Assembly (NCBI GenBank): GCA_051530055.1
Contig: JBMGUZ010000013.1
Coordinates: 1-58,880, forward strand
Source of the DNA: Neoechinorhynchus agilis
Taxonomy: Eukaryota > Animalia > Acanthocephala
Direction: 5' to 3'
DNA length: 58,880 nt
The notes under the pieces were generated by a model. The model worked only from the letters and a program-made list of their open reading frames with translations, was not told the origin of the DNA and did no database searches. The position numbers and the translations under genes are program-made. The first letter of the stretch is position 1. Every line of letters starts with the position of its first letter. This document shows, piece by piece, positions 1 through 50,504 of the stretch.

Positions 1-377
1 GATCGCAGGATTCGAAACAGCGGCTATTCTCATGGCCGTGTTTCATTTTCTATCCCAAGGACGACTCCGGATCTTGTGGCTGCAAGTTTCTTCTGTCTTT
101 GGACAAATCTCTTGTAAGTGTCGCCTACTATTGTAAATATTCTTGATCTTTGTCTTAAGTGACCTATCAACAAGTGGGAATCGGATCGTTTGTTTTCTAC
201 GTCAAAGAGAAGGACCATCGATTTTGCTATCCATTTTATTTGGGGATTGCAAGATGCCTTTTTTCGATCTTATCCTTTATATTTTCTCAAACAGCGACAT
301 TTATTCTCGGCACCGAGGTAAAGAAAATATCAGAAGAGTTTTCTGAAACGCTTGTTCCTCCACTGAAATATTTCCTA

Positions 378-1993
378 GATGAAGAAGCCTTCCAAGTTAA
401 TGAATTAGGCTACCATTCTGGTACAATTGAGACGGATTCTTTTCAGTCGGAGAGGTTGATAGATCCGACAAAATCAGGCATAGGCGATCAACTGTTATAT
501 GATAGAATGTGGTTTTGGAGAAAATTCTCAACTTTCGGACGAATTGACGTCATTGAAACCATATCGATTATATAACGTTATGTGTTTTGATGTTTCGTGC
601 GTGCGCGATATATATTAAAAAAACCTAGATATTCATGTAACCTCAAAAACGTTCCTTTTTCGATCCCTACGTTGTCTGGGATAAGCGTGATCATCATACC
701 CACGCCTTTGCCGCATTAGTCAATTCTCTTATCTCGCAAAACCGCTCTACCATCTTTGGCCCGACCCCTCGATTGCAATGGGCTCTTTGTTAAATCTAAT
801 AGAATTTGCGATGAAGGCCTCCATGGTTCTCGCCTCTTCTATGAAGAAGCCTTCCAAGTTAATGAATTAGGCTACCATTCTGGTACAATTGAGACGGATT
901 CTTATCAGTCGGAGAGGTTGATAGATCCGACAAAATCAGGCATAGGCGATCCACTGTTATATGATAGAATGTGGTTTTGGAGAAAATTCTAAACTTTCGG
1001 ACGAATTGACGTCATTGAAACCATATCGATTATATAACGTTATGTTTTTTGATGTTTCGTGCGTGCGCGATATATATTAAAAAATTCTTGTCAGGAAGCC
1101 AAAGCATGACAGATAGAATGTGGTTTTGGAGAAAATTCTCAACTTTCGCTATCTCCTAATTAACCAAAATTAATTCTAGGAATTTGATCCGCACAACAAG
1201 AATATAAAAATATAAGCCAAAATGTTGCATACAGCCGATAGTTTTGACAAATTTTGATCGAATTCATGAAGATTCGCGTGTGATAACGCTGGAATCATCC
1301 TCGTAGAGAAATAAATTTTATGGACCAACTAGAAATAATCAATTCATTGGGCAAATAAAACCTAATGAGTTCTATAGACCAGCCGATGAGCAGCATTTTG
1401 GATTTAAAGAGGTTAAGGACAACCGCTTATAACATATCAGCCGTGATAAATGGCCAGACGCTACGAGGTTGTTTACACTTCTACGAGCTGATCGAACTCT
1501 AACAGGAGATGAAAATTTATGCACTGATGGTTTTACAGCCTATATATTCTATGCAGGATTCTCACATATCATTAAGAATTTAGTTCAAAGCCCAGAATGT
1601 GACTGAGCGTTATTGGAAGTACATACTGTATACAATAACCTTGGATTTTACAGAATCCCAATTCCATCAATATTCAATGACTGGTTTTCAGCAATTGGAA
1701 CCTTTACAGGCAAGAATAATGGAAGGATTTACCGCCCAGCCATCCCATTAATACCAACCGAAGGGCCACACTTTTCGAACTACTTTTATAGTCAAGAAAC
1801 AGCGCCCATCTTTCCAAACTTCAGAGCGTTATTTGCAAAAGCCGTTCTACTTTCAAGCGATACGACTTTTACGTTTACAGCAGCGCACCGAAGCAATGCG
1901 AGCCGTCGTCCCGGTATTTGCATCATTAGCAGCAGCTGTCCTCAACAGAGCAGCATTCCCTGCCTGTCAATAACTGAGAAGATATTTACAATT
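378..1993 (+). repeat. Left copy of a duplicated block (internal ~460-bp 'A' units plus ~850-bp 'B' segment); decayed coding sequence of unknown, possibly viral, origin
   Basis: gaagaagccttccaagttaatg recurs at 381, 844, 5094 and 5552. 1109-1993 matches 5669-6414 at about 99%, apart from a 138-bp in-frame indel (~1722-1859 present only on the left). Confidence 0.9.
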
Positions 1994-2069
1994 TCATATA
2001 TCATTGTCTTCGGGGTGAATTTGATTGTGCGTTGGCGAATCCTGCCCCCGGTGCTTTCGTTACTCATTT

Positions 2070-2116
2070 ATATTCGAAATATTTCACAAGGTTTTCCTTG
2101 CCTCTTCAGTCGATAT
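2070..2116 (-). ncRNA. Hammerhead copy in the inverted pLTR (intact core)
   Basis: Exact reverse complement of 4794-4840. Confidence 0.7.
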
Positions 2117-2165
2117 CTAAAATGGAGGATATGGACATCATGCACAGCCGGTCACGTCTGGGTGT

Positions 2166-2321
2166 CGCGGATCTGAGCTACACCCAGACGTGACCGGCTG
2201 TGCATGATGTCCATATCCTCCATTTTAGATATCGACTGAAGAGGCAAGGAAAACCTTGTGAAGTATTTCGAATATAAATGAGTAACGAAAGCACCGGGGG
2301 CAGGATTCGCCAACGCACAAT
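2166..2321 (+). repeat. 5' pseudo-LTR of PLE-1
   Basis: Identical to 4731-4886 except A>G at 2263; contains the ORF start ATG at 2278. Confidence 0.93.
2229..2275 (+). ncRNA. Hammerhead copy in the 5' pLTR with core mutation GAAA>GAAG
   Basis: Same motif as 4794-4840 but G at 2263 replaces A15.1. Confidence 0.6.
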
Positions 2322-4758
2322 CAAATTCACCCCGAAGACAATGATATATGACATTAAAAAACAGTATGGCGATAACTGTACGAAGGGCATTAGCCACCTG
2401 TTAAAAATGGAGATTAGGCTTCTTAGCATCAAGCAAGGCCTTAAATTCATGCAGACATGTAGGGACGAGAACTTAACACCGATGTGTGTCCGACTAAAAT
2501 CAGGCATAATTGGATTCCATGGATCATCACTGCAGCGCTCCTTTGAAAGACAATTATTGAACTTCGCCATTGTAGAGATGAGGAAACGAATATGTCACAT
2601 TAAGAACGATTCCATGAGCACATGGGAATATCTTACACGCACTCTTGACTATGACGATATTATGTGGCTAAATGGATACGTTAATGAGCGAATAAATGCC
2701 CAAACACTGGAGATTAAGAAACGACATAGCAAGAAGTTGGATCGACTGCGACCAAACATCCCTAAGGTAGATACATATTTTCTCAACAAGTCCAAACGAA
2801 TTTTTACGGAAGAGGAAGATGCCTTATTGAGCAAAGGTCCTGATTACATTGTTAAACGGCGAATATGTGAAACCCAGATTAGATGTGACACCGAGCTACT
2901 CATACATACCGCTCCAAACGTAACCTGTGAAGCAGCAGAATATGATATGATCGCGAGGGCCGGGAACAAGGGTATCTGTAATCCGGAATGCACAGTAATC
3001 AAACAACTTAAGAATGACCAGACAGTTACAATCCTTAAATCTGACAAAGGACGTGCCCTAGTTGCAGTAGATACTGAAGAGTATAAAGATGCGGCCCACA
3101 GTCTGCTGGACTCTGGCAAGTTCGTCAAACTCAGTGCCAATCCAACAGAAAAACGGGAGACACAACTAAATGCATTATTGAGGACTCTACGGAAAAATAA
3201 CTCGATCACTGAGCACTTTTACCAACAGACGAGGTCTTCCACAGCCAGGGCTTCCTTCTTGTATCTTTCCCCAAAAATACACAAACCAACGATACAATAC
3301 CGACCAATAATAGCCAGTTACAATGCCTTCAATCATCGTTTGGCCCGAAAAATCAATGCACTAATAAGAAGCGTCATGCCGAACACTCCGTCCTACATAG
3401 CTGACGGTCCTTCCTTTGCAACTCGAATGCGACTGGAAAAGTATGAACAGTGCAAATTCTTCACGGCCGACGTAACGTCCTTATTTACCAACATCCCACT
3501 TCAGGAGACAATTTCCATAGCAGCTGAACTTCTACACAATCAATGCGAAGAACCGCGCCTGGATAATAAAACGTGGACAACTCTACTGCAGTGGTGCACA
3601 TGCAAGACCGTTTTTGAATTCGATCAAGTTTTCTATGAACAACGCGACGGAGTTGCAATGGGTTCACCTCTGACACCCACTCTAGCTGATCTCTACATGA
3701 GAAGATGGGAAAACAACTTCATGAAGAAGCAACCCAACATCAAAAAGTGGTATCGCTATGTTGACGACGTGTTCATAGTCACTGATGATGAAACGAGCAT
3801 GAGAGACCTAAGCATTCCACTCAACATGCAGGATCCAAACATCCAGTGGTCAATGACTCAGGAAGATGAAGAGGGGGCTATCTCCTTTTTGGACGTAATG
3901 ATAAAACACGATGATAAAGGCAACATCAAAACACAGCTCTACCGCAAGCCAGGTATACCATGGGGTCCACCTCACTGGTCGAGCCACCAACCGTTCCACT
4001 ATAAAATAACAGCGGCAACGTCCTACTTCAAGAGGGCCAGGATGATTTCTTCAGAAAGCAGGGATTGGGAAGAAGAAAAACAAAGTATCACAAAAGTTCT
4101 CAGATCACGAGGCTTCCCTGAATATGCCATCAAAATCAGCCTGAAAAAGGCAACACATAGCGGGCATCGCAAGAAGAAGGATACCGCAAACATCTCCCCC
4201 AAATACGCTGGCTTCAACCACATAAGTGACAATGCGACCGGAAAACTGAGGCGCCTGAACTACCTCGTTCCAAATCTCTTTATCTACAACAAACGGGGCG
4301 CATCCATTGCGGGCATTCTCAAGAGGAAACCCAGTCAAGAGGCAAAATCAGGGATATACAAAATCCCATGTGCAGAATGCCCAAAGGTCTACATTGGACA
4401 AACCATGCAAGGGATCGGAAAGCGGATCTCGCAGCACAAACAAGCATGCAGGACATTCGACAAATCCTCTGCCATATCGAACCACCAGCAAACAATCCAG
4501 CACAGGGTAGATTTCGAAAAGGCGGCATTCCTAACCAGGGAACCGAATCTGAGGAGAAGACTGATTCTGGAGGCCATTCACATCCGAGGAAATTCGACGA
4601 TGGAAGGCAACAAATCTAACCATACGCTGGTGCTACCAATGTTGCGTAGCATGACGGGCAAATTAGTCGGCAACAAACCGCAAGAGGTGTGCGCGGATGG
4701 AACTCCCCACACTTCGGGTATTAGCAAACCCGCGGATCTGAGCTACACCCAGACGTGA
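2278..4758 (+). CDS. Penelope-like reverse transcriptase + GIY-YIG endonuclease (826 aa)
   Basis: RT motifs LYLSPKIHK..YRPII, ADVTSLFTNIP, GVAMGSPLTPTLADLYM, WYRYVDDVF, ISFLDV, LYRKP; GIY-YIG motifs GIYKIPCAECPKVYIGQT, RISQHK, LEAIHI..N. Confidence 0.96.
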   Translation: MSNESTGGRIRQRTIKFTPKTMIYDIKKQYGDNCTKGISHLLKMEIRLLSIKQGLKFMQTCRDENLTPMCVRLKSGIIGFHGSSLQRSFERQLLNFAIVEMRKRICHIKNDSMSTWEYLTRTLDYDDIMWLNGYVNERINAQTLEIKKRHSKKLDRLRPNIPKVDTYFLNKSKRIFTEEEDALLSKGPDYIVKRRICETQIRCDTELLIHTAPNVTCEAAEYDMIARAGNKGICNPECTVIKQLKNDQTVTILKSDKGRALVAVDTEEYKDAAHSLLDSGKFVKLSANPTEKRETQLNALLRTLRKNNSITEHFYQQTRSSTARASFLYLSPKIHKPTIQYRPIIASYNAFNHRLARKINALIRSVMPNTPSYIADGPSFATRMRLEKYEQCKFFTADVTSLFTNIPLQETISIAAELLHNQCEEPRLDNKTWTTLLQWCTCKTVFEFDQVFYEQRDGVAMGSPLTPTLADLYMRRWENNFMKKQPNIKKWYRYVDDVFIVTDDETSMRDLSIPLNMQDPNIQWSMTQEDEEGAISFLDVMIKHDDKGNIKTQLYRKPGIPWGPPHWSSHQPFHYKITAATSYFKRARMISSESRDWEEEKQSITKVLRSRGFPEYAIKISLKKATHSGHRKKKDTANISPKYAGFNHISDNATGKLRRLNYLVPNLFIYNKRGASIAGILKRKPSQEAKSGIYKIPCAECPKVYIGQTMQGIGKRISQHKQACRTFDKSSAISNHQQTIQHRVDFEKAAFLTREPNLRRRLILEAIHIRGNSTMEGNKSNHTLVLPMLRSMTGKLVGNKPQEVCADGTPHTSGISKPADLSYTQT

Positions 4759-4886
4759 CCGGCTGTGCATGATGTCCATATCCTCCATTTTAGATATCGA
4801 CTGAAGAGGCAAGGAAAACCTTGTGAAATATTTCGAATATAAATGAGTAACGAAAGCACCGGGGGCAGGATTCGCCAACGCACAAT
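4731..4886 (+). repeat. 3' pseudo-LTR of PLE-1
   Basis: Direct repeat of 2166-2321; contains the ORF stop at 4756-4758. Confidence 0.93.
4794..4840 (+). ncRNA. Minimal type I hammerhead ribozyme in the PLE-1 3' pLTR
   Basis: ATATCGA-CTGAAGA-G-GCAAGG-AAAA-CCTTGT-GAAA-TA-TT-TCGAATAT: CUGANGA core, stem II hairpin, GAAA, palindromic AUAU in place of stem III, stem I ATA-TCGA/TCGA-A-TAT. Predicted cleavage between 4832 and 4833. Confidence 0.75.
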
Positions 4887-6414
4887 GTAACCTCAAAAAC
4901 GTTCCTTTTTCGATCCCTACGTTGTCTGGGATAAGCGTGATCATCATACCCACGCCTTTGCCGCATGTGTCAATTCTCCTATCGCGCAAAACCGCTCTAC
5001 CATCTTTGGCCCGACCCCTCGATTGCAATGGGCTATTTGTTAAATCTAATAGAATTTGCGATGAAGGCCTCCATGGTTCTCGCCTCTTCTATGAAGAAGC
5101 CTTCCAAGTTAATGAATTAGGCTACCATTCTGGTACAATTGAGACGGATTCTTTTCAGTCAGAGAGGTTGATAGATCCGACAAAATCAGGCATAGGCGAT
5201 CCACTGTAATATGATAGAATGTGGTTTTGGAGAAAATTCTCAACTTTCGGACGAATTGACGTCATTGAAACCATATCGATTATATAACGTTATGTTTTTT
5301 GATGTTTCGTGCGCGTTATATATTAAAAAACCTAGATATTCATGTAACCTCAAAAACGTTCCTTTTTCGATCCCTACGTTGTCTGGGATAAGCGTGATCA
5401 TCATACCCACACGCCTTTGCCGCATGTGTCAATTCTCTTATCGCGCAAAACCGCTCTACCATCTTTGGCCCGACCCCTCGGTTGCAATGGGCTCTTTGTT
5501 AAATCTAATAGAATTTGCGATGAAGGCCTCCATGGTTCTCGCCTCTTCTATGAAGAAGCCTTCCAAGTTAATGAATTAGACTACCATTCTGGTACAATTG
5601 AGACGGATTCTTTTCAGTCGGAGAGGTTGATAGATCCGACAAAATCAGGCATAGGCGATCCACTGTTATATGATAGAATGTGGTTTTGGAGAAAATTCTC
5701 AACTTTCGCTATCTCCTAATTAACCAAAATTAATTCTAGGAATTTGATCCGCACAACAAGAATATAATAATATAAGCCAAAATGTTGCATACAGCCGATA
5801 GTTTTGACAAATTTTGATCGAATTCATGAAGATTCGCGTGTGGTAACGCTGGAATCATCCTCGTAGAGAAATAAATTTTATGGACCAACTAGAAATAATC
5901 AATTCATTGGGCAAATAAAACCTAATGAGTTCTATAGACCAGCCGATGAGCAGCATTTCGGATTTAAAGAGGTTAAGGACAACCGCTTATAACATATCAG
6001 CCGTGATAAAAGGCCAGACGCTACGAGGTTGTTTACACTTCTACGAGCTGATCGAACTCTAACAGGAGATGAAAATTTATGCACTGATGGTTTTACAGCC
6101 TATATATTCTATGCAGGATTCTCACATATCATTAAGAATTTAGTTCAAAGCCCAGAATGTGACTGAGCGTTATTGGAAGTACATACTGTATTCAATAACC
6201 TTGGATTTTACAGAATCCCAATTCCATCAATATTCAATGACTGGTTTTCAGCAATTGGAACCTTTACAAGCAAGAATAATGATACGACTTTTACGTTTAC
6301 AGCAGCGCACCGAAGCAATGCGAGCCGTCGTCCCGGTATTTGCATCATTAGCAGCAGCTGTCCTCAACAGAGCAGCATTCTCTGCCTGTCAATAACTGAG
6401 AAGATATTTACAAT
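4887..6414 (+). repeat. Right copy of the duplicated A/B block
   Basis: Starts at gtaacctcaaaaacg (equals 637) right after the 3' pLTR; ends at gatatttacaatt (equals 1981-1993), the point where the left copy meets the element. Confidence 0.9.
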
Positions 6415-6489: not shown

Positions 6490-8030
6490 AAATCGATTTT
6501 ATACGCAAAAAGCTGAATGCAAGAAAACGAGAAGTTCTGGTATAAAATAGACGACAAAGTTCCGAGCCCTGAGAATCGAGCTTTGTATTAAAAGATGCAA
6601 ACGAACGTGTTTCGGTGATTATTCCCAAATATCAAAACAGTGATAAATAGCTTTCAGCATAGAAAAGTGTATGGCTTCCTGTGTATCCGAATGCTTTAAA
6701 TGGCTAAAAAAAGACGACAACTTCACTATTCAGCAAAATGGTCAATACTAAAGAAATGCCCTTTAATTACAGAAGTTTTGATATATTTCCAAGTAAACTT
6801 TTAGCAGTCCTTAGTATGATTTTTGTTAAGACCATAGACAATCATCGCTGATAATCGATTAATGAATTAACAATCAAACGCTGCAAAAGTTGTCACCAAA
6901 GCATTTCTTGATCTTATACGGAAATTATGAAATGAAACTAAAACTCTTCCTTACGAAAATATATTCCTAGAAAGTAGCATTAATAACGAAATTTTACCAG
7001 TAGACACTTCACGGAATAACACCACCATGGCCAAGAGATTTACGAAGGTTTCGAAAAACTATAATTTGTATATTATGAACGATTGGAGTTATTCGTTCGA
7101 TGACAAATGTTACGGAATGCGCCGTGTTCAATTCAACAAAGTCGAAGAGTTACATAGCAAAAGGACGAAGTTCAGAGAGTTAAATTTTATCTGTAATGAG
7201 GGCCTTGCAATACGGCTCTGGTTTAGAAACCATAATCTAAGGAAAAGAGGTGACGGCTGGGCAGAAAGTGTATTTCGAAAACTTACCAACCTCTATCGTG
7301 ATGGATTTGTTAATAGGAGATCGAAGACCAGTTAGAAATTCGAGCTGAACAAGGCCCGGGCAATCTATGGGACAAGGTCCGTAGATTCTTTGATAATGGT
7401 CTATGTTATCCATTAGTTAGAGCGAAATCTTGATAAGTTGAGTTGGGTCCAACATGTGAATTCTCCGCCTCCCTCCGAGCAAAGGCACTATGACAGATTA
7501 CAGGCAACAACGGACGGATTGACATTTGGGCTAATGCTCGACTACTCCGATTTCAATGTCCAGCATACGATAGAGAAATCCAAGCTCAAGTCACTTTAAC
7601 TATTGCCACTGTAGCGAAACTCTATTATGGTTGGGCCAAACATATTGGAAATGATGGCTGTGGGCATTACGTTCAAAAACTCCAGAAACTCCTGATGCTC
7701 TAGAGTGGATACTCAATTAAAGAAGACGTGGAATAGATAGAAAATTGCATCGGCAACTGTCTTCTGAGCGATGGAAGCTTTGAGACCAGTGCAAATGAAG
7801 GATGTCATGATCATCAAAGTGCCCATTACGGAAACGATCTCCATCTGATTGGCTACTCTCGCAACCAATCACAGAAGCGCGTTTGATCGCTATCTTTTAA
7901 TGGTTGACGATTTATTAATGATAGCAATGTTGATCGGTCATCGACTTACAGTCAATTTCCGTAACTCCCTGCAACTCTTTAACATTCCAGAGGTGAAATC
8001 GAGACAAAGAACGATGATCATTCAACTTTA
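6490..8030 (+). pseudogene. Endogenous viral element: decayed RNA-dependent RNA polymerase of a toti-like (Ghabrivirales-type) dsRNA virus
   Basis: Reading through stops gives SKTS*KFELNKARAIYG (7321-7371) and MLDYSDFNVQHT (7534-7569); after a frameshift near 7573, GNCLLS (motif B-like) and AHYGNDLHLIG (7821-7853, GDD-like). Order and spacing match totivirus motifs such as TKYEWGKQRAIYG, DF.DFNSQH, G.L.SG and HNGDD. Confidence 0.8.
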
Positions 8031-8604
8031 AATGCCACTCACCTAAAGGTTGAGGAATCAATACAGTATTTAAAGTAGGAGTTAGATTACTATCATCACT
8101 CTTTGAACAGCACAGTTCAAGTTTCGGGAAACTTGACTACAATTTCAACCTCAATCTAATGTCTCAGGACATAAAACAATTCTTGAATTTTGTGACAGCC
8201 AAGCATTGTTTTCTGGGTGGCGAGAAACTGTGTTTTTAGGTTGGAGAAACAACGTTTCCAACAATTTCAAGAAAAATTACATACATTGAGGCGCAGAGAA
8301 GTCCGTGCTCGATACGAACGTAGTAGAAATCAAGTATCCGCTCCAAAATCGCTCAATTGATCAGAGAACAAAAAAGAACGACGCAAGGAACACGAGCGCG
8401 ACATCCACAGAAAACGGACGGCGATTTGGAAAGTACGAAAAAACCAGGCGAATTCTGACTAAAACTGGACATCATGAAACGCCGGAAACACGTCCAAGAG
8501 TTTTATTCCTCCAGATCTACCATTCTTTCGTGTCTGCTCTCATTGTGTACGCTCGCTGCTTTACTTGAAGTGTGCGAACACCCTCACAAAACAAGAATTG
8601 ATGG

Positions 8605-8976
8605 CTAGTCAGGTTGTAACCACTGGTGGCGGTGGTGGGATGCTCGACAAAATAATTCTTGTCGTTTCTGGCTAAGCTTCTTCAATAAATTAACGCGTTC
8701 TTCTTTGAGGCCACAAAGATCTTTTCCCATTTCTTGGAGATCATCAACAAAACTTGCAACTTTATTTTCATGAATCTTTATAAGATTTAAAACGGGACTT
8801 ATTAAATTTTTCGATAAGTTGTTTTTATAGGATTTGTCTTCGAAAGATGACATTAATTTCTCTTCTTCTTCGGAATAAATCTCTTTCATTATTTTGTTCC
8901 TCTCCTCGAATTCCTTCAATTTCTTTTCTTGTGCCTTAAATCGCTCGTCTATTTTCGTCCTATCGTCATTATCCAC
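8605..8976 (-). pseudogene. Partial duplicate of the coiled-coil protein exon at 9921-10469
   Basis: ~550-bp segment 8651-9200 is about 90-95% identical to 10081-10635; the ORF diverges into unrelated sequence after RQELF. Confidence 0.6.
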
Positions 8977-9562
8977 TCGCTTCTCAAATCGATTCGGGAA
9001 TCTTGGTTATGTTCTGTAAAAATCTTTCTCAGTCAGCATCTAAAATTAAAATGACAAATTTTGTGATCTATAATTTTCACAACACGTTTCTTTGTTGGAA
9101 TAGAAGAAGTTCGTGACTTTAAGACATGAATGAAATTATTATTTCAACATTGCAGTGGCACGTTTCACATTTCTATATGAATTTGGCAGCAATCAAAAAA
9201 AATTGACCTCCTTGGAATAGGGTTAGAAGCGACAAAAATATCTGGAACTCTTGGGCTATCTCTGGCCTTGTGTTCTATTCCAGAGGGAGACCGCCTGAAC
9301 AACGCCTGAAATTCCAAAGTACCTTTCTCAACGCCCTAGCCAAGCTACCTTACCCTTGTGGAAAGTTCCCTCACTGGGCCGCGGAAAAAATGAACAAATG
9401 AATCGACATTTCCAAGGACGACTTAGGCTGTACGTCCTAACAATCTCCACAGTTCATTATGCTACGTGGTTCGTTTTCGAATAAATCGATTATTATTATT
9501 ATCTGCATTTCGAACAATTTATTATCCTATCGTTAAACGGAATTAAATGTTTTTCTACATCT

Positions 9563-13285: not shown

Positions 13286-13393
13286 AATTAGGAAATAAGA
13301 TTACTAAGCGCTGCTTGGTTGTTCAGCCGCCTGTTTTATCTGGTGATGATTGTTTGATAGACAATCCGACTGAAAGAGAGAGATTTTATTCAA

Positions 13394-23220: not shown

Positions 23221-23820
23221 TGTATAGAAAAACGCAAAAAAAGGAAGGAGAAATGTAAAATTTTGGCGATTGTTTTAGATCAAAAGGAGAGACATTTTTA
23301 AAAGATTTAAAATATTGTGCATACCGAATAGAGCGTTATATGAATTGGACTCCAAAGACGAATTATCATAATTTCGACTGCATCGTATCTATTTTGCGTC
23401 TCAGTTTCTAAATCTATGGATACCAATGACTCACAGATTGTTGATCGCATCTTTTGTTTTGAGTTCGCTCCTTATAAATACCAGAAATCGATGAGCATCG
23501 TTTAAAATTGAGCTTCTCAGCGTTGAATTTAAATCGGGACTCAGAAAGGTCTTCTCCGATTGATCCAAATTGCCAACTTCTCCTAAATGTTATTGATTTT
23601 TTATAGGCTTTTCGTGGTCGCTTTTCGACTTCAACTTACAACATTCCTCTTCAATTCTTAAAAAAGTCTTTAAAAACATTTAATCAAATTTAACTCACTT
23701 TATCAGAAGAAAAAGTATGTGACTGTCCTCAAACTTGAGAGTGAGTCTTGTACGACACTTTAATTCTGAAAACCGACAGGTCTTTCTAAGAAAGCAAAAG
23801 TAGCGAATCTCGAAATTTCT

Positions 23821-24318
23821 GACTGTCTCCTTAGTAAAGATTATCGATTTTCCAGAATAGCGATCAGGTTTCAGAACAAGTTCAGCGATGTGTTGATGGC
23901 AAATAAATGGATATCCTGAAAGTGGAATGATTTTATTCTAGATTTTCAGGCGAAAATTCGATGCATTCATGTTTTTCATTTTAAGCAAAGAACACGCTGT
24001 CGACCTCGAGAATTACGAGACTTTGGACTGTCTTCTTAGTAAAGATTATCGATTTTCCAGACTTGTGATCAGGTTTCAGAACAAGTTCAGCGATGTGTTG
24101 ATGACAAATAAATGGATATCCTGTAAGCGGGATGATTTTATTCTAGATTTTCAGACCAAAATTCGATGCATTCATGTTTTTCATTTTAAGCAAAGAAGTT
24201 CATGCTGTCGACCTCGAGAATTACGAGACTTTGGACTGTCTTCTTAGTAAAGATTACCGATTTTTCAGACTAGTGATCAGGTTTCAGAACAAGTTCGGCG
24301 ATGTGTTGATGGCAAGTA
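23821..24318. repeat. Tandem repeat, ~205-208 bp unit, ~2.4 copies
   Basis: gactgtc(t/c)..cttagtaaagatta recurs at ~23821, 24026 and 24234. Confidence 0.85.
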
Positions 24319-25091
24319 AACGGCGTAGAGGATGCAATATTAACAAAATTAAATCATTTTTCTTTATTTTTGTGTGACCAAAAGAATATTAAACTGCCGC
24401 ATTCGATTATATTAGAAGGCACTTCGGTTTCCGCCAATGAGAGAAACGGAGAACCATAAATAGCATCGTGCATTGGGCAGCGAAGAGCATGTAAGAAATT
24501 TAAACCATCTTGGATAAAATGGAAGCTTAATCGGTATTTGTTTTAGAGTAATCTTCGAAATGATTTAAAGTTTATGAGTGCTGTGAACTCGAGTTGTAGG
24601 CAAAAAATCTGTTCTTGATTCGTTACAAAATCAGTAATAAAAATTTGAATAATAATCGAAATGCCGCAGCGCTCAGAGATATCCGAGAAGGGCCATCCGA
24701 AGAAGTTGTTGATAAAGAGCAAGGATTTTATGAACAATGTTACAATGTTTTTCACAAAAAGGCGTTCCCATTCTATGAAACAATCGACTATATGCGGGAT
24801 TTTTGCAATATAATTGGAATTCAAGCCAGAAAAACTTTCCTGATTTCAAGGAAACACTCGACGAATTGTTGCGGCGAAAGTGTGATTGTTAATGCGATTT
24901 AGAAACAATTGAAACGGGGAAAACAAGGGAGCAAACTTATATGAGCTTTTATATTTACATTCAAGCGATAGGAAGACCAAATCTGTGTTTATAAGTAAAA
25001 ATTAGATGTTTCAAAGAATCTAAAAATAAATGTATAAGCATTTTGTATCGAAAATAGACAAGTCTTGATTTTCAAACGCTACGAGGTTAAG

Positions 25092-25237
25092 AAAAAATTA
25101 ACTGGACGGAACATGGATTTGTAACGAACAAATTTAAACAAGGCATTGCAATCGCTTTAATCGGTGTCGCCGAAACGTGATTTCTGTCTGGTGCTCTGAA
25201 TGTTAAAGTGAAGAAACTCATTGAGGCGCAAGGAAAC
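25092..25237 (+). repeat. ~145-bp dispersed direct repeat, copy 1 (copy 2 at 27433-27574)
   Basis: aaaattaactggacg...ggtgtcgccgaaacgtgatttctgtctggtgctctgaatgttaaagtgaagaaactcattga is shared at about 90%. Confidence 0.85.
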
Positions 25238-25686
25238 GACGGACGTAATTATGAATTTCTCAGCAGCTTTGCGATATGGTCATGCTCTCCCTAAAAATTC
25301 CTTTCTGTGATGGGACCCTTCAATCAAATCCTCAACGAGAGAATAAGCGAAATTTTCAAAATGCTTGGTTTGTACTTTTGGTAAAATTCAACGTTTTTAA
25401 ATGTTCATACAAATTTCATCGTCGCACTCTAATTTTTTAATCATTTTAAAGATTTCAAACTCTCTGAAATAATCTGCCTGTTGATTATCAAGAACATAAT
25501 AATCGAAATTATAGCAGCGATTTTATATTTATGAGGCGCTAAAACGAAATAAAAACATGCAATTAAAGCCAGAACTCGATAATCCAACTTTAACGTAAGA
25601 CTCAAAACTGTGTAATAATTTTATTTACAGAAAACCCAGAAAGTCTTGCAGCGTTTTAGGCTGCATTAAAACTCGAACGAACTCGC

Positions 25687-26859
25687 CTAGTTGTTCAGTT
25701 GCGAGTCGTCCATTGTATTGGCGTCTTCGCCATTTTGTTCATTCGTTGTATCCACTGATTCTTCGTTTGATTTATCAAATACCAACAAATGCGATAAAGA
25801 TTTTTCCAATGGTTTCAATCCATACGACTTTTTAATCGATAGCTTCACCATAAATGATTGTCGCGAAACGTCGTAGCCGATAATCTTTGCGATTAATCGT
25901 TCCTTTTGTGCGAATCGGGTGTCCATTTGCCGAAACCGATACTCTAACGGTCCTTGAGCCATTTCTTTAGTTGAACACCCATCCAAATGACACTTAAAAA
26001 TCGTCTTTCGAATAGCGAGTATCGATGGAGAAGCAACGTAGCATATTAATTTAGAAACAAACCGTATCTTTCCGGAATCTACTTCTTCGACAAGAAATCT
26101 ATGACCCTGGTCCTCCAGGATCTTTACTCTTTTGAATGATTTATCGGAATCTTTGACGAGACAATAATGGCCAGGATAAAGTTCTCTCGATACCTCCTCA
26201 GCGTGACGTCCATTTGAATTAATTAATTCTCGATTCAGATAAGTTCGCCATTCCTGTACAAATTGGGTTATAAAAATATTTTCAATGTTGCAGAAGTGCA
26301 CCAGCTTATAAATAATTTCGATATTAATCAAATATTTGCCGTCCTCGTCCTTTCTTATAAAATCACAAAAGACATTCCCTTCAAATGCTGCCTCGGGAAC
26401 TTGTGAGTGGTTTTGATTTACAAATACGGAATTGCCATGTTGGTTTTCCAATTTTAGTTTACATGGAAGGGCCAGCCTCGGAATGGAGTTGAAAATTCTT
26501 TTAACCGGTCGTAGATTTACCAATGGAAGCCACTCTTGGTGACCGTAATCAATGTAAAAGACTTTGAATGAAGATGTCAGAATATTCACTTCTGTAATTT
26601 GACCTCGGTACCACTTTCCGTCCACAAGGGACTTGCCAATACATTTGGAATTAAGACCATACACAAGAAATTGATTGAAACGAAGAGATTCATAAACATT
26701 TCGTAGACCGATCTCAAGATCCAATCGATTTTTGAAGATTAAATTTGGTAGAAGGTAAATATTTTGAGGATTATCCATGTAACTGACTTGACAGTAGACA
26801 GAATCTTGTAGAGAAACTATAAACTGCGGGTAATCCGCTGGAGGTACAAAAGTGCTCAT
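25687..26859 (-). CDS. Tandem extended-Tudor domain protein (TDRD-like, small-RNA pathway type)
   Basis: Tudor 1: VSYMDNPQNIY..DGKWYRGQI..KVFYIDYGHQE..LRP..IPRLALPCKL. Tudor 2 is degenerate: GHYCLVK..FKRVKI..FLVEEVDSG..FKCHL. Confidence 0.88.
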   Translation of the reverse strand: MSTFVPPADYPQFIVSLQDSVYCQVSYMDNPQNIYLLPNLIFKNRLDLEIGLRNVYESLRFNQFLVYGLNSKCIGKSLVDGKWYRGQITEVNILTSSFKVFYIDYGHQEWLPLVNLRPVKRIFNSIPRLALPCKLKLENQHGNSVFVNQNHSQVPEAAFEGNVFCDFIRKDEDGKYLINIEIIYKLVHFCNIENIFITQFVQEWRTYLNRELINSNGRHAEEVSRELYPGHYCLVKDSDKSFKRVKILEDQGHRFLVEEVDSGKIRFVSKLICYVASPSILAIRKTIFKCHLDGCSTKEMAQGPLEYRFRQMDTRFAQKERLIAKIIGYDVSRQSFMVKLSIKKSYGLKPLEKSLSHLLVFDKSNEESVDTTNEQNGEDANTMDDSQLNN

Positions 26860-27432: not shown

Positions 27433-27574
27433 AAAAAATTAACTGGACGAAACATGGATTTGTAACGAACAAATTTAAAAGCATTGCGATAGCTTTAATC
27501 GGTGTCGCCGAAACGTGATTTCTGTCTGGTGCTCTGAATGTTAAAGTGAAGAAACTCATTGAAACGTAAGGAAA
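27433..27574 (+). repeat. ~145-bp dispersed direct repeat, copy 2
   Basis: Matches 25092-25237. Confidence 0.85.
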
Positions 27575-27907
27575 TGATGCTGCTCCGAGACTTAGACTTT
27601 CAAGGAAGATAAAAGAAGTCTCGCTAAATTACGACAGTTCAAACTCACGAAAAAATAAAGAAACTCAACGTCGCAATGTGCGGAATAAAGAGAAGACTTT
27701 ATATAAATGATTATTACGTTTGATGAAGTTCAAATCAAAGAGATTTTGGAAACTTTTTAACGCTGAAAAACTTTGTGAGTGAATTTCGATGCTTTCGCCG
27801 CAATAAAACAGAAAAAGTGACTAACAGCTTTAAGCCGAAGACAGCGATTAAGTTCGTTACAAATCGCGCAGGTTGATGGCCATAACATTCAATAAACACT
27901 GTGAGCT

Positions 27908-29062
27908 TTAGTATTTATTTCGCAAAACCGCCGGAACAGTGAGTTGTTCGCCCGCTAACAAATCTCGAACGGTGAAAAGAGCCATTGCTTGTCTGTCTGT
28001 TCCATTAGATTTAAAGTGAACCTTCTGAATGAGCAAATTGGCATTGCTCTGAGAGCGATGAAAAAGATGAGACACGTTGGTGATTGGCGCTACGTTTCCA
28101 TTTCTCTCCTTATCGCTGTCCAGCTGACAAACAAAATAACCCTTTGGAAGATCGTGGTTCACACGGACACCCAATCTTTTAGTTCTATGAACAAATACCT
28201 CCAAATAAGCTCGAATTCCTTGGCTGACCAATGTGTTTGGACAGTGCCCTGGACATTTACACGCATCGCCACATTCTTGAACTCCTCGTGGAATTCCACC
28301 TTCGGGCAATCTCAAATATTCGTAAGTATTTTGCTTCGAAGTCAGTGTGTTTTCTAAACTAAAATGCTCGCAAACCGGAGAAATGTAATGTAAATGAAGC
28401 ATACGAAAAACTCGAATATGGATCTGTGAATTTAAGATTTAAATAATCAATCTTTACGATTGCTTTACGTAGATCCTTTTTTAGTTTAGGTAAAATATCT
28501 TAGATTCTACGATAAAAAAACGAATTTCATTCTTAAACAGATCTGTAAATTTTCTGAAGGTATCAATTATTGCATTTTAGTATCCGGCAATTCTTCAAAA
28601 TTAACGTAGAATTCAATGGGAAGTTTAATCCATGGTGCGAATTGCATTTGTTTAGACTAAACGCCACTCTTTTAAACTCGCCTAACGCCAACATTTGAGA
28701 GCATTTCTAGGTATCAAATTTGGCGAAACTTGCGAGGATCCTGGTAGACGATAGAAAACATTCACATCAAAATGACAACGATGCTCATTGCAGAGTGGAA
28801 TTTCTTTTCTTTCCAGACCATTCGAAATATCTTTATCCACGACATTTTTCCCGCTTCCAGCGTACTCATAATCGATGTCCACATTTTCTTGGAAAGTAAA
28901 TAAATCGATCGATAAATGTGACCTTGTCGTTTCCAACTGTTCGAAAACTTGACGGATTTTGTAGAATGATCGAAAACAAGGCGATACGTAAAACACTTTT
29001 TTGGTCGTCCCGGTTCGATTTATCATGCGTTTCCAACCGTAGATTAAAAATATTTCAGGCAA
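27908..29062 (-). CDS. SETDB1/2 (Eggless)-like MBD + pre-SET + SET protein, divergent; 5' end not located
   Basis: MBD: LIYGWKR..VFYVSPC.RS....QVFEQL...LSIDLFTF; DISNGLERKEIPLCN; pre-SET: YEYLRL..GVQECGDACKCPGHCPNTLVSQG; SET: LEVF..LGVR..DLPKGYFVC..NVSHLFHRS..NLLIQKV..GEQLT. Confidence 0.75.
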
Positions 29063-31894
29063 AGAAAACCTTGTGAAATATTTCAGGCAGGGAAAACCTT
29101 GTGAAATATTTCAGGTAAAGAAAACCGTGTGAAATATTTCAGGCAAGGAAAACCTTGTAAAATATTTCAGGCAGGGAAAACCTTGTGAAATATTTCAGGT
29201 AAAGAAAACCTTGTGAAATATTTCAGGCAGGGAAAACCTTGTGAAATATTTCAGGCAGGGAAAACCTTGTGAAATATTTCAGGTAAAGAAAACCGTGTGA
29301 AATATTTCAGGCAGGGAAAGCCTTGTGAAATATTTCAGGCAGGGAAAGCCTTGTGAAATATTTCAGGCAGGGAAAACCGTGTGAAATATTTCAGGCAGGG
29401 AAAGCCTTGTGAAATATTTCAGGCAAGGAAAACCGTGTGAAATATTTCAGGCAAGGAAAACCTTGTGAAATATTTCAGGCAGGGAAAACCTTGTGAAATA
29501 TTTCAGGTAAAGAAAACCTTGTGAAATATTTCAGGCAGGGAAAACCTTGTGAAATATTTCAGGCAGGGAAAACCTTGTGAAATATTTCAGGCAGGGAAAA
29601 CCTTGTGAAATATTTCAGGCAAGGAAAGCCTTGTGAAATATTTCAGGCAGGGAAAACCTTGTGAAATATTTCAGGCAGGGAAAACCTTGTGAAATATTTC
29701 AGGCAGGGAAAACCTTGTGAAATATTTCAGGCAAGGAAAACCGTGTGAAATATTTCAGGCAGGGAAAACCTTGTGAAATATTTCAGGCAGGGAAAACCTT
29801 GTGAAATATTTCAGGCAAGGAAAGCCTTGTGAAATATTTCAGGCAGGGAAAACCTTGTGAAATATTTCAGGCAGGGAAAACCTTGTGAAATATTTCAGGC
29901 AGGGAAAACCTTGTGAAATATTTCAGGCAGGGAAAACCTTGTGAAATATTTCAGGCAGGGAAAACCTTGTGAAATATTTCAGGCAGGGAAAACCTTGTGA
30001 AATATTTCAGGCAGGAAAACCTTGTGAAATATTTCAGGCAGGGAAAACCTTGTGAAATATTTCAGGCAGGGAAAACCTTGTGAAATATTTCAGGCAGGGA
30101 AAACCTTGTGAAATATTTCAGGCAGGGAAAACCTTGTGAAATATTTCAGGCAAGGAAAACCTTGTGAAATATTTCAGGCAGGGAAAACCTTGTGAAATAT
30201 TTCAGGCAGGGAAAACCTTGTGAAATATTTCAGGCAGGGAAAACCTTGTGAAATATTTCAGGCAGGGAAAACCGTGTGAAATATTTCAGGCAGGGAAAAC
30301 CTTGTGAAATATTTCAGGCAGGGAAAACCTTGTGAAATATTTCAGGCAGGGAAAGCCTTGTGAAATATTTCAGGCAGGGAAAACCTTGTGAAATATTTCA
30401 GGCAGGGAAAACCGTGTGAAATATTTCAGGCAGGGAAAACCTTGTGAAATATTTCAGGCAGGGAAAACCTTGTGAAATATTTCAGGCAGGGAAAACCTTG
30501 TGAAATATTTCAGGCAAGGAAAACCTTGTGAAATATTTCAGGCAGGGAAAACCTTGTGAAATATTTCAGGCAGGGAAAGCCTTGTGAAATATTTCAGGCA
30601 GGGAAAACCTTGTGAAATATTTCAGGCAGGGAAAACCTTGTGAAATATTTCAGGCAGGGAAAACCTTGTGAAATATTTCAGGCGGGAAAACCTTGTGAAA
30701 TATTTCAGGCAGGGAAAACCTTGTGAAATATTTCAGGCAGGAAAACCTTGTGAAATATTTCAGGCAGGGAAAACCGTGTGAAATATTTCAGGCAGGGAAA
30801 GCCTTGTGAAATATTTCAGGCAGGGAAAACCTTGTGAAATATTTCAGGCAGGGAAAACCTTGTGAAATATTTCAGGCAGGGAAAACCTTGTGAAATATTT
30901 CAGGCAGGGAAAACCTTGTGAAATATTTCAGGCAGGGAAAACCTTGTGAAATATTTCAGGCAAGGAAAACCTTGTGAAATATTTCAGGCAGGGAAAGCCT
31001 TGTGAAATATTTCAGGCAGGGAAAACCTTGTGAAATATTTCAGGCAGGGAAAACCTTGTGAAATATTTCAGGCAGGGAAAACCTTGTGAAATATTTCAGG
31101 CAGGGAAAACCTTGTGAAATATTTCAGGCAGGGAAAACCTTGTGAAATATTTCAGGCAGGGAAAACCTTGTGAAATATTTCAGGCAGGGAAACCTTGTGA
31201 AATATTTCAGGCAGGGAAAACCTTGTGAAATATTTCAGGCAGGGAAAACCTTGTGAAATATTTCAGGCAGGGAAAACCTTGTGAAATATTTCAGGCAGGG
31301 AAAACCTTGTGAAATATTTCAGGCAGGGAAAACCTTGTGAAATATTTCAGGCAGGGAAAACCTTGTGAAATATTTCAGGCAGGGAAAACCTTGTGAAATA
31401 TTTCAGGCAAGGAAAACCTTGTGAAATATTTCAGGCAGGGAAAACCTTGTGAAATATTTCAGGCAGGGAAAACCTTGTGAAATATTTCAGGCAAGGAAAA
31501 CCTTGTGAAATATTTCAGGCAGGGAAACCTTGTGAAATATTTCAGGCAGGGAAAACCTTGTGAAATATTTCAGGCAGGAAAACCTTGTGAAATATTTCAG
31601 GCAGGGAAAACCTTGTGAAATATTTCAGGCAGGGAAAACCTTGTGAAATATTTCAGGCAGGGAAAACCTTGTGAAATATTTCAGGCAAGGAAAGCCTTGT
31701 GAAATATTTCAGGCAGGGAAAACCTTGTGAAATATTTCAGGCAGGGAAAACCTTGTGAAATATTTCAGGCAAGGAAAACCTTGTGAAATATTTCAGGCAG
31801 GGAAAACCTTGTGAAATATTTCAGGCAGGGAAAGCCTTGTGAAATATTTCAGGCAGGGAAAACCTTGTGAAATATTTCAGGCAGGGAAAACCTT
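29048..31894 (+). repeat. Tandem array of a 28-bp unit AGGCA(G/A)GGAAAACCTTGTGAAATATTTC, ~100 copies
   Basis: 2847 bp / 28 is about 102. Each unit contains a stem-loop (gcaRgg-aaaa-ccttgt), and the array carries the 12-bp palindrome TGAAATATTTCA once per period. The unit at 29449-29476 is identical to PLE-1 4807-4834. Confidence 0.98.
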
Positions 31895-32449
31895 TACTTT
31901 TTATTGCGAATTATCAAATGATTTATTTATTTGATAATTTTCGGCCTTCGCTTAGGCTTTTTTCGGTCCATACAATTTATTGATTTCCATATTTCGGCAG
32001 CCAATGAAACACTAACAATCGTACCGAAATATCGGACCCAATTAATTTTGCTTCAAATTTTCCGCCATATAAAAACACAATTCAATTTAACAAAATTGAT
32101 GACTTTCGGATCAAAACGCAAAATAAAAGCGAAATGAACGAGCAATAATTTTTATTGATCGATTATTGATTGCGTCAATGGGTTCGTATTTCCATAATGA
32201 GTACAAAGTGTTTAGACTAAAGTCTTGTAACTTTTCCTCTTTTTTTAAATTTTTCGATGTTGCTTATTGAACCGACTCAAAAAATCGGAAATCGTGACTA
32301 TATCGTCGGTTTCAGTGAATTTCAATTTTAAATAGCCATTGTTTCGCAGAAGGATTTTAATTTTTAGTAGTGATCGGAAATGCAACAAAATCTTCTCATC
32401 AAACGATACTTTTCTCTCTAAAAACTTCATTATTGAAATCAAACGGGAT

Positions 32450-33727
32450 TTATTGCTGAAATCTTTTTTTTACTGCCATTAATTGAACTTTAAGCTTCCA
32501 AACTTGCTCGCTTTCCAACTTTTTGGTTACTTTTAACACATTTCCGTCGATGGTAACATCAGGATCCTTTTCGTTCAAGAATGAATAACTATAATCCACA
32601 TCGTGCTTGTCTGAGGATTCCTTATATCGATATTCCCAAGTTCTATGTCTTAGATTCGTTATTTCGATTTCAATATCCGTAGTTATAACTCGTCCACTTT
32701 CTTTAAAATTATCCACCTTTCTTCTAATGAGTCCGCTTGAATCTTCACCGATTCTTATTTCTCGCTTTGCTCCTGCTGGTAATTGATCGAGCCGAACATT
32801 TGCAATAATACGTCCTTGTTCTCTAATAGACATTTTCCCAGTTGGTAGAAATTCGTTACTTGTAATTTCATAAATTCTACTAAACTTCAACTCTTCTCTT
32901 TTCTCATTTATTGTTTCATATGAAGACCAAAAATGTGGCGTTATTTTAGCGTCCAGAAACTCTTCATAGAGGTCACTACGAGCACTTAGCTTAAAGGGTT
33001 TACTAATCGTGTATTGGAAAAGCCCTCCGATTTCCTTATGATCGCCAATATCGATCGAAGGAGGCGGTGCTGCGTCGGTCATTGATGCGTAGGCTATCGT
33101 CCGTCTCACGTGACTTGCTCTTTTTGGAATTGGATGTGGAATGCTGGCAACATCTCCTCCAAATAATTCAGCGCTATTGACTTTGTATGAATGAGTACTC
33201 GGATTAGAAATGACCGCATAGCATTTTATCGTGGCATTCTGGTCTTTTTCCTCAACGTCCAATCGATATATCGGTCTCCATTTTATTTGTCGATCTAAAT
33301 AACTGAGAATTGCCGTCTTTACGCTGGGATCATGGATGTGAAATCTAACGGAAACCACGTTTTTCATCGGAGCTGATTTAAATTCGAACTGTGATCGATT
33401 AGCGTAATAGAACCTTTTTGTCTCAATGTCCTGAACAAGACTGTTATCATCGTCAATAAAAATGGCTCCTTTGCATTCCCCCGTTTTCTCGGTTCTTACG
33501 AAAATCTCTTCTCCTTCAAGACTGTGATTCTGGGTTGTAACAGTCGTCGAAACTCTTCCATTTGGGACTTCCAAATCAATACTGTCCGGTACGATATGGC
33601 AAAAATCCGATTGATGAAATCGAACAGTCGCCTTTGCCTCTTCTAATATGTCGATGTTTTCCCTAATTTCCGAGAATTGATCGTATATTCTTAGGTCAAT
33701 CGAACTTTCTTCATTGCTCAATGACAT
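32450..33727 (-). CDS. Intronless 425-aa protein, DUF4139-like
   Basis: LSYLDRQIKWRPIYRLDV, AVISNPS...ELFGG, FQYTISKPFKL and FLPTGKMSIREQGRII resemble DUF4139 family blocks (recognition from memory only). Confidence 0.5.
   Translation of the reverse strand: MSLSNEESSIDLRIYDQFSEIRENIDILEEAKATVRFHQSDFCHIVPDSIDLEVPNGRVSTTVTTQNHSLEGEEIFVRTEKTGECKGAIFIDDDNSLVQDIETKRFYYANRSQFEFKSAPMKNVVSVRFHIHDPSVKTAILSYLDRQIKWRPIYRLDVEEKDQNATIKCYAVISNPSTHSYKVNSAELFGGDVASIPHPIPKRASHVRRTIAYASMTDAAPPPSIDIGDHKEIGGLFQYTISKPFKLSARSDLYEEFLDAKITPHFWSSYETINEKREELKFSRIYEITSNEFLPTGKMSIREQGRIIANVRLDQLPAGAKREIRIGEDSSGLIRRKVDNFKESGRVITTDIEIEITNLRHRTWEYRYKESSDKHDVDYSYSFLNEKDPDVTIDGNVLKVTKKLESEQVWKLKVQLMAVKKRFQQ

Positions 33728-48024: not shown

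Positions 48025-50504
<2,480 letters not shown>

Follow-up and report, generated by a model that had tools for sequence, protein, structure and literature searches.

A segmentally duplicated Argonaute-Tudor locus with a SETDB1-derived relic in a transposon-rich contig of the acanthocephalan Neoechinorhynchus agilis

Can small-RNA silencing genes that lie next to transposons and viral remnants form a clustered genome-defence locus, carrying both the effectors and the source of their guides? The question is raised by an unplaced 58.9-kb contig of the acanthocephalan Neoechinorhynchus agilis (JBMGUZ010000013.1, assembly GCA_051530055.1), the whole of which is referred to here as the window. Three host genes, encoding an Argonaute (AGO), a Tudor protein and a protein with MBD and SET domains, all lie on the minus strand inside 12.4 kb (16615-29047), in agreement with the original prediction of three silencing-type genes within ~13 kb on one strand. 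The other features it listed, an endogenous viral element (EVE), two Penelope-like elements (PLEs), retroelement fragments and a repeat array, were likewise each found where it had placed them. The reading that we favour, with moderate confidence, is that of a segmentally duplicated AGO-Tudor locus with a dead SETDB relic, to which the transposable element (TE), EVE and array sequences are secondary neighbours. The host genes, their parts and the repeats that bracket the Tudor gene are as follows.

16615..19557, minus strand: AGO-clade Argonaute, a single 980-aa open reading frame (ORF); Pfam domains, structure and homologue matches, ratio of non-synonymous to synonymous substitution rates (dN/dS)
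19450-19557, 18883-19227 and 18634-18771, minus strand: RG/RGG N-terminus, ArgoN and L1 of the AGO, respectively (Pfam)
18238-18510, 17791-18006 and 16789-17745, minus strand: PAZ, MID and PIWI domains of the AGO, respectively (Pfam)
19558..21972, minus strand: AGO upstream region, ~92% identical to the chromosomal paralogue
25092..25239, no strand assigned: the downstream one of two ~148-bp direct repeats on either side of the Tudor segment, 92.6% identical to its partner
25687..26859, minus strand: Tudor gene, 390 aa (Pfam PF00567, structure matches, AlphaFold, dN/dS)
about 25978-26220, minus strand: degenerate Tudor-like domain 2 (weak Pfam match, AlphaFold island)
26452-26799, minus strand: TDRD/SND1-type Tudor domain 1 (PF00567)
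27433..27577, no strand assigned: the upstream one of these two ~148-bp direct repeats
27911..29047, minus strand: SETDB1/Eggless-derived remnant (Pfam MBD, Pre-SET and SET, homologue collinearity, dN/dS)
27911-28438, minus strand: partial pre-SET and degenerate SET ORF of the remnant (Pfam)
28685-29047, minus strand: MBD ORF of the remnant (Pfam), separated from the SET ORF by a probable intron

The AGO ORF matched the Pfam Piwi family with an E value of 1.5e-76, accompanied by weaker ArgoN, ArgoL1, PAZ and ArgoMid matches in the correct order, three of which fall under the curated cut-offs. Among solved structures, human AGO3 and AGO2 were the best matches (E ~1e-68, with human AGO1-4 at 1e-65 to 1e-68), while PIWI proteins matched at E ~1e-35 or weaker, and all named database matches were argonaute-2-like or AGO2. 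We thus assign the protein, from its sequence, to the AGO clade and not to the PIWI clade. The alignment to human AGO3 covers residues 236-923. By this alignment the DEDH slicer tetrad is intact (D695, E744, D776 and H913) and the 5'-phosphate pocket of the MID domain (Y-K-Q-K) is present (Y615, K619, Q631 and K662). The description of the gene as a slicer-type AGO therefore holds at the level of individual residues, and the protein is predicted to bind 5'-phosphorylated guides and to be capable of slicing. The NCBI gene model (ACOME3_010471, 940 aa) splices out ORF residues 887-926 as an intron, a stretch that contains the SIPAP..YYAH motif and the catalytic His. For the chromosomal paralogue of this gene (ACOME3_007400) the annotated protein has 980 aa and is unspliced, and the intron of the NCBI model is therefore likely to be erroneous.

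The RG-rich N-terminus attributed to this AGO is present in the form of RG/RGG motifs, but the tract is short, with a modest 3 RG and 2 GR within the first 36 residues. Since a paralogue of 60% identity (P0002) carries 10 RG and 5 GR in its first 70 residues, the RG-rich N-terminus appears to be a trait of the AGO family that is reduced in the window copy. Homologue searches with residues 236-927 as query gave 105 matches, and those with the full-length protein gave three proteins; our guess is that the low-complexity N-terminus dominated the full-length search. In the collections searched, no relative of either the AGO or the Tudor protein with more than ~30% identity was found outside N. agilis, and synteny was therefore compared within the N. 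agilis genome and not across species. The window AGO appears to belong to a lineage-specific, fast-evolving family with at least seven copies in N. agilis. Using the Nei-Gojobori method, as for all values given here, dN/dS was 0.25 between the window AGO and its chromosomal copy (937 codons, dS 0.10) and 0.53-0.64 between the window AGO and a decayed copy (L003, described below). We take the former value to indicate purifying selection on the AGO in both intact copies.

The Tudor protein contains one complete PF00567 domain, which spans positions 7-120 of the 121-position profile with an E value of 1.5e-19 and for which the closest solved structures are SND1, Drosophila Tudor, TDRD1 and TDRKH. 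The gene had been predicted to encode tandem Tudor domains; the first is complete, while a second, degenerate one is putative. The latter gave a weak Pfam TUDOR match (E 0.035; 14.6 bits, cut-off 23) and corresponds to an AlphaFold island at residues 225-276, a five-strand beta-barrel with a predicted local distance difference test (pLDDT) of 68-84. The island lies within a poor model, obtained from a 3-sequence alignment with a mean pLDDT of 41.6, of which only the two confident islands were used. A Tudor paralogue (P0006) yields two TUDOR stretches with Pfam. An origin of the gene from the Tudor domains of SETDB1 was considered and rejected, as the Pfam family is PF00567 and not Tudor_4 or Tudor_5. 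With a dN/dS of 0.16 between the window and L003 copies, the Tudor gene appears both intact and under purifying selection. Because they are intact and constrained, the window AGO and Tudor genes are probably working genes of a small-RNA pathway.

Does the Tudor domain read the AGO? Binding of RG-rich N-termini by Tudor domains has precedent in the AGO clade (PMC6381116, PMC2877743, PMC8270938), and recognition of methylated RG motifs of the window AGO by the window Tudor domain is putative. Compared with SND1, the aromatic cage has Leu at the first position, keeps three Tyr and has His in place of the conserved Asn, a replacement that is invariant across the N. agilis Tudor paralogues. Such a non-canonical methylarginine cage would weaken the proposed interaction. 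Elsewhere on scaffold CM121342.1, at 13.55 Mb, two near-identical and divergently oriented Tudor paralogues with 40% identity to the window Tudor were found (L005, 8434-11716); no Argonaute lies within 10 kb of them.

The MBD-SET gene was found as a remnant with MBD, pre-SET and SET regions of the SETDB1 family, and not as an intact gene. Its MBD scores 28.5 bits in Pfam (cut-off 21), the SET match of 21.4 bits is slightly under its cut-off, and the Pre-SET match is weak. The only solved-structure match of the MBD is SETDB2. Of the 150 best matches to the SET ORF, about 75 extend collinearly to the MBD ORF; the names of the ten among them with the best MBD match were checked, and eggless, SETDB1-like and met-2-like proteins are represented. 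Descent of the remnant from the SETDB1/Eggless/MET-2 family is the conclusion that we draw from these sequence matches. When compared with H3K9 methyltransferases, only the end of the pre-SET and the N-terminal part of the SET domain align, and the C-terminal half scores below 0. The remnant has HRSQ in place of NHSC and QLTVPA in place of the catalytic-Tyr motif ELxFDY, and reading of the ORFs indicates that about six of the nine pre-SET cysteines are kept. The post-SET region is absent, as are the N-terminal Tudor domains, the gene being cut at the array; no start codon is found upstream of the MBD, and the frame runs into the array. Between the window and chromosomal copies the SET region has a near-neutral dN/dS of 0.72. 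Because the chromosomal protein (P0109) carries identical degenerate motifs, the decay would predate the duplication. We consider the SETDB-like piece to be a 5'-truncated, catalytically dead relic and not a working methyltransferase. The true orthologue, P0215 (ACOME3_002463), has Tudor_4, MBD, Pre-SET, bifurcated SET and post-SET domains with all motifs and sits on a different, 19.4-Mb scaffold. The notion of a SETDB-like effector at this locus is thus not sustained.

How did the three genes come to lie together? Window positions 16530-29047 form a ~12.5-kb segmental duplicate, with ~91% identity, of a region at 11.70-11.73 Mb on CM121342.1 (L006/L007), a 16.4-Mb scaffold on which the window gene order recurs. 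Homology stops on one side precisely at the edge of the array (29048) and on the other 85 bp beyond the AGO stop (16530), and the flanks are unrelated on both sides. On this account we rejected an allelic relationship, in which the contig would be a haplotig of the chromosomal locus, and because neither flank is shared the two copies are taken to be paralogues. The chromosomal copy encodes an intact 980-aa AGO (P0260) with 94% protein identity to that of the window. Its SETDB-like gene keeps an N-terminal exon with a weak Tudor_5 match that is absent from the window, and has its MBD spread over three reading frames. The Tudor segment is missing, and one 148-bp repeat stands where the window has two. 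This repeat looks chimeric, the left part resembling the upstream window copy and the right part the downstream copy, which hints that the Tudor gene was lost from the chromosomal copy by recombination. Also missing are the retroelement fragment found at 21973-23219 in the window, whose empty site is preserved, the array and the whole TE/EVE block. The 205-bp tandem repeat that lies between Tudor and AGO in the window (23805..24323) is present in at least 13 copies in the chromosomal paralogue (L006 11506-15042).

Linkage of the AGO, Tudor and SETDB-like genes would thus be ancestral and not a matter of chance, because the SETDB-like gene and AGO are collinear in the chromosomal paralogue and Tudor coding sequence adjoins AGO in two further copies (L003 and L004). 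The caveat of chance proximity attached to the original prediction can, as far as gene adjacency is concerned, be set aside. We see no independent evidence for selected clustering here, as the AGO-Tudor linkage across copies is best explained by co-duplication from one arrangement. It could be argued that the contig carries no meaning at all, being a chance adjacency or the product of misassembly in an unplaced, repeat-rich contig, with non-functional duplicates. The contig is indeed unplaced, near-identical contigs exist (L009, 99.2%), the NCBI AGO model is evidently imperfect and the SETDB-like piece is dead. However, the gene order recurs on a chromosome scaffold, both the AGO and the Tudor gene have full-length ORFs and dN/dS values of 0.16-0.25, and the right half of the contig consists of ordinary intron-containing genes, making this explanation very unlikely in our view.

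Four further AGO copies are decayed (L003, L004, L008 and L009), two of which (L003 and L004) keep adjoining Tudor coding sequence. In L003 (contig 28), a 5'-truncated Tudor gene (98% protein identity) is followed by 376 bp equivalent to window 1-376 and then by a broken, truncated AGO; this Tudor-AGO segment sits inside a coiled-coil gene, of which the window holds an intact copy (9227-10976). In L004 (chromosome, 7.31 Mb), as in L008, the AGO is split among several frames; ahead of it, L004 keeps the C-terminal half of the Tudor gene. L009 (contig 57) is 99.2% identical to window 19511-8444 (11 kb) and has one AGO frameshift. As the junction in L004, L008 and L009 is identical, running from the Tudor 3' flank through a ~100-bp linker to AGO from codon 17, these three appear to descend from one rearranged copy. 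A further locus, L002, holds the intact AGO paralogue P0002, with no Tudor gene nearby. With at least seven AGO copies, four of them decayed, the region appears prone to breakage, duplication and insertion.

Such a pattern raises the question of whether an AGO cassette, with or without Tudor, has been spread by a mobile or recombinogenic element, so that the copies reflect capture and not host function. The copy number, the shared 5' junction of three decayed copies, the position of the L003 segment inside the coiled-coil gene, the placement of a PLE-derived array exactly at one border of the duplicated segment and the recurrence of two repeats (Y and 12809-13300) beside several copies are all in keeping with this idea. 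Against it, no terminal repeats, target-site duplications or transposase or reverse transcriptase (RT) genes delimit a cassette, the copies vary in extent and breakpoints, and both intact copies are under apparent purifying selection. Ordinary segmental duplication followed by decay fits the pattern, and we give little credence to a mobile cassette.

If segmental duplication accounts for the genes, what of the elements around them? These, together with the neighbouring host sequences, are listed below.

1..376, no strand assigned: repeat Y, with a 97% copy between Tudor and the truncated AGO in L003; also in L008
379..1984, plus strand: upstream copy (~1.3-1.6 kb) of a direct repeat flanking PLE1, with internal ~460-bp repeats
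1985..4886, plus strand: PLE1, a Penelope-like element (RT and GIY-YIG ORF, terminal repeat, inverted arm)
1985-2168, inverted: 5'-truncated arm of PLE1, 184 nt
2278-4758, plus strand: intact PLE1 ORF, 826 aa (RVT_1 E 3e-11, GIY-YIG E 6e-4)
4742-4886 (equal to 2177-2360), plus strand: PLE1 terminal repeat
4885..6400, plus strand: downstream copy of the direct repeat flanking PLE1, partner of 379-1984
6931..8028, plus strand: EVE, a toti-like RNA-dependent RNA polymerase (RdRp) fragment with a Pfam core at 7309-7582, its extent beyond the core being inferred
8512-9209, minus strand: partial duplicate of a coiled-coil gene
9227-10976, minus strand: complete copy of the coiled-coil gene (ORFs), which with its duplicate spans 8512..10976
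10929..12781, minus strand: retroelement fragment with an N-terminal Cys/His region and the start of an RT (RVT_1 E 0.005, weak), GC 52%
12809..13300, no strand assigned: ~490-bp repeat, also beside AGO copies in L003, L004 and L008
13466..14629, minus strand: PLE2, a 5'-truncated Penelope-like element (C-terminal part of the RT, weak GIY-YIG)
14765..16118, plus strand: retroelement C-terminal fragment (Cys-His motif region)
21973..23219, plus strand: retroelement fragment between Tudor and AGO, antisense to both
23805..24323, no strand assigned: 205-bp tandem repeat between Tudor and AGO, 2.4 copies
29048..31897, plus strand: minisatellite, 28 bp x ~102 (tandem-repeat analysis, 96% matches)
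32450..33727, minus strand: host ORF of 425 aa weakly matching DUF4139, not part of the duplicated segment and without a link to silencing

Both PLEs of the original prediction are present, PLE1 intact and PLE2 5'-truncated, and as they are 27% identical they represent different PLE families. The repeat at 379-1984 may be either a partial tandem resembling a pseudo-long terminal repeat (pseudo-LTR) or a host repeat. At its 5' end (1985-2360), PLE1 contains a 184-nt inverted repeat, 97% complementary with an 8-nt spacer, that would form a long hairpin if transcribed. An Rfam match to mir-549 at this site was dismissed as spurious, reflecting only the inverted repeat (46.9 bits against a gathering threshold of 93). 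No hammerhead ribozyme was found by Rfam at the gathering threshold at PLE1 or the array, nor at E up to 10 over 1900-5200, and a CUGAAGA...GAAA stretch was rejected as a hammerhead, having no canonical core fold and no Rfam match.

The proposed EVE could be recognised as a degraded toti-like RdRp fragment: it matches Pfam RdRP_4 (PF02123) with 30.2 bits against a cut-off of 22, is incomplete at either end and is interrupted by 8 in-frame stops within 366 codons. The 366 bp at window 6915-7280, which form the upstream part of its ORF, recur in L008 and L009. There, pieces of window 1-623 and 6915-7280 lie in another order upstream of the decayed AGOs (L008 3743-5011, L009 250-614). This piece order suggests tandem or permuted duplications, in which the EVE-containing block would have taken part. 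In contig 28, the coiled-coil gene is split by the Tudor-AGO segment (L003 2507-3567 and 8159-8876), and the partial coiled-coil copy of the window has the breakpoint sequence of that contig.

The pieces that had been called CRE fragments are GC-rich, mutually homologous retroelement fragments (that at 14765-16118 shows 31% identity, E 1e-15, to that at 22.0-23.2 kb), for which assignment to the CRE clade is putative; Pfam and solved-structure searches with the retroelement ORFs gave no informative match. GC content is 48-52% in the retroelement and PLE2 fragments (10929-16118, 21973-23219), compared with 36-40% in the host genes and the remaining contig.

The array at 29048 has, as predicted, a PLE origin and an antisense orientation. 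By chance, zero matches to its unit would be expected. The unit matches a 28-mer of the PLE1 terminal repeat at 2242-2269 (plus), 4807-4834 (plus) and 2076-2103 (minus) with 1-2 mismatches; a common variant of the unit appears to match the PLE1 28-mer exactly. No further PLE sequence was found flanking the array, which has the orientation of PLE1, opposite to that of the host genes, and lies exactly at the segmental-duplication breakpoint. It begins ~550 bp downstream of the DUF4139 gene.

Could the elements nonetheless supply guides to the AGO? In a self-contained defence island, minus-strand read-through would give antisense RNA over PLE1, the EVE, the plus-strand retroelement fragments and the array, which would serve as AGO guides, with the Tudor protein as a scaffold and the SETDB-like protein as a link to chromatin. 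Of the seven pieces derived from TEs or the EVE, five run antisense to the host genes, namely PLE1, the EVE, the array and two of the retroelement fragments, although this 5:2 split is not significant. The position of the array behind the DUF4139 gene on the same strand would suit read-through. The idea gains from the intact, constrained state of AGO and Tudor and from the AGO-clade precedents for Tudor binding cited above, but is set back by the non-canonical Tudor cage. PIWI-interacting RNAs (piRNAs) of N. agilis are clustered in the genome and carry a ping-pong signature (PMC12256650); the window Argonaute, however, is of the AGO and not the PIWI clade, and pararotatorians, N. agilis itself among them, are reported without RNA-dependent RNA polymerase, N. 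agilis also without Dnmt1/3 (PMC12256650). Furthermore, the SETDB-like member is truncated and catalytically dead, and the intact chromosomal AGO copy has neither the array, the TE/EVE block nor the Tudor gene. On balance we regard the island as unlikely. A narrower version, which we hold to be more doubtful still, would see AGO and Tudor as a co-inherited RG-tailed client and its reader, inside a read-through unit antisense to the PLE, the EVE and an array of 28-nt period. If true, the locus would encode a silencing effector module together with its own guides. We know of no description in animals of a locus that encodes both.

Because the TE/EVE block and array are absent from the intact chromosomal copy, their co-location with the effector genes looks secondary and not conserved. 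We therefore prefer to see these elements as neighbours by history, for which a role as guide source or in defence is putative. The proposal of a clustered defence locus is retained to the extent that AGO and Tudor are linked and constrained; it loses the SETDB-like gene, which is dead, and the TE, EVE and array sequences.

Under the favoured reading of a duplicated AGO-Tudor locus, the ancestral arrangement would have consisted of three head-to-tail genes on one strand: a degenerate SETDB1/Eggless paralogue, a two-Tudor TDRD-type gene and AGO. This trio would have been segmentally duplicated, the window holding the derived copy. The upstream breakpoint would have cut the SETDB-like gene at its MBD, where a minisatellite derived from a short PLE fragment now lies, and the retroelement fragment between Tudor and AGO would have been inserted later. 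The TE/EVE block, the retroelement fragment and the minisatellite may have arrived after or together with the duplication. The RG/RGG N-terminus of AGO may be arginine-methylated and read by the Tudor domain.

Several observations weigh against this history. The view of AGO and Tudor as working genes draws on intact ORFs and dN/dS, and the direction of Tudor loss or gain on only 3-4 informative sites. The TE block appears partly not unique to the window: because L009 shares the AGO-proximal TE block (to 8444), and L004 and L008 share it to 15867 (~660 bp), the chromosomal copy could have lost it. The SET ORF is open with an identical stop in both copies, and the SETDB-like piece may have a non-catalytic function. 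Haplotigs or collapsed repeats may also be present among the small contigs.

The AGO and Tudor genes of this locus are candidates for a small interfering RNA (siRNA)-type defence arm in the N. agilis parasite lineage, within a phylum whose small-RNA biology is almost undescribed beyond PIWI proteins and piRNAs. The supplementary material of the N. agilis papers on the transcriptome and on small RNAs was searched for the AGO, Tudor and SETDB-like genes, with no match. The locus also illustrates how within-genome paralogues can dismantle a plausible 'defence island', one effector proving a relic and the targets later insertions. It would be far more interesting if the TE/EVE block and array do feed the AGO.

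The right half of the window (34-58.9 kb) encodes a beta-adaptin, an RRM protein, an ENPP-type phosphodiesterase, an ankyrin protein and a DEAD-box helicase. The helicase exons (47872-50712, plus strand, Pfam DEAD E 2.7e-27) and the silencing genes are ~18 kb apart, with no evidence to connect the two. At 50761-54588 a 181-bp unit is repeated in ~21 copies with 96% identity, each with a ~17-bp inverted repeat; this second array adjoins the C-terminal ORF of beta-adaptin (54517-55485).

How does the locus compare with known systems? Among the mobile and viral elements, canonical endonuclease-containing (EN+) PLEs likewise occur as a partial tandem (pseudo-LTR) with an adjacent inverted 5'-truncated copy, so that PLE1 has the textbook arrangement, and another acanthocephalan, Pomphorhynchus laevis, is rich in PLEs (PMC8557442). 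PLE1 differs in that its terminal repeat lacks an Rfam-detected hammerhead, and a 28-bp piece of that repeat has been amplified to a 2.85-kb minisatellite at a separate site. As in other toti-like EVEs, the viral fragment is a stretch of RdRP_4 degraded by stops; unlike them it comprises only a partial polymerase, with no capsid part found, and its upstream 366 bp occur within duplicated DNA in two other contigs. The SETDB-like remnant shares with SETDB1/Eggless/MET-2 the collinear order of MBD, pre-SET and SET, and differs from them in lacking the N-terminal Tudor domains, NHSC, the catalytic Tyr, post-SET and the bifurcating insert.

Animal piRNA modules (PIWI, TDRD and SETDB1/Eggless) and flamenco-type uni-strand clusters have three protein families in common with the window, and in flamenco-type clusters, as here, TE/EVE fragments are mostly antisense to local transcription. 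In contrast to these modules, the window Argonaute is not a PIWI protein, and its SETDB-like gene is a dead paralogue with the real orthologue elsewhere. The status of a piRNA cluster is set by its small-RNA output, whereas the window is known from its sequence. To our knowledge, the effector genes of piRNA systems are not encoded inside the clusters.

The closest parallels are Arabidopsis AGO2/AGO1 with PRMT5/TSN, Toxoplasma Ago with Tudor-SN, and C. elegans CSR-1A, in which Tudor-SN-type proteins read the RG/GR-rich N-terminal extensions of AGO-clade Argonautes. The window Argonaute is likewise of the AGO clade and carries RG/RGG motifs at its extreme N-terminus; among solved structures, the window Tudor domain is closest to SND1 (Tudor-SN) itself. 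The window differs from the Tudor-SN systems in its short RG tract (3 RG, 2 GR), in a Tudor protein without staphylococcal-nuclease domains, and in a cage with Leu and His for the aromatic residue and Asn, leaving binding putative. Physical linkage of AGO and Tudor genes was not met in the RG-Tudor literature, although no search was aimed at it. To these systems the window adds an AGO-Tudor pair that has been duplicated and whose Argonaute family is lineage-specific, set in a duplication-prone, TE-invaded region with a SETDB1-derived pseudogene alongside.

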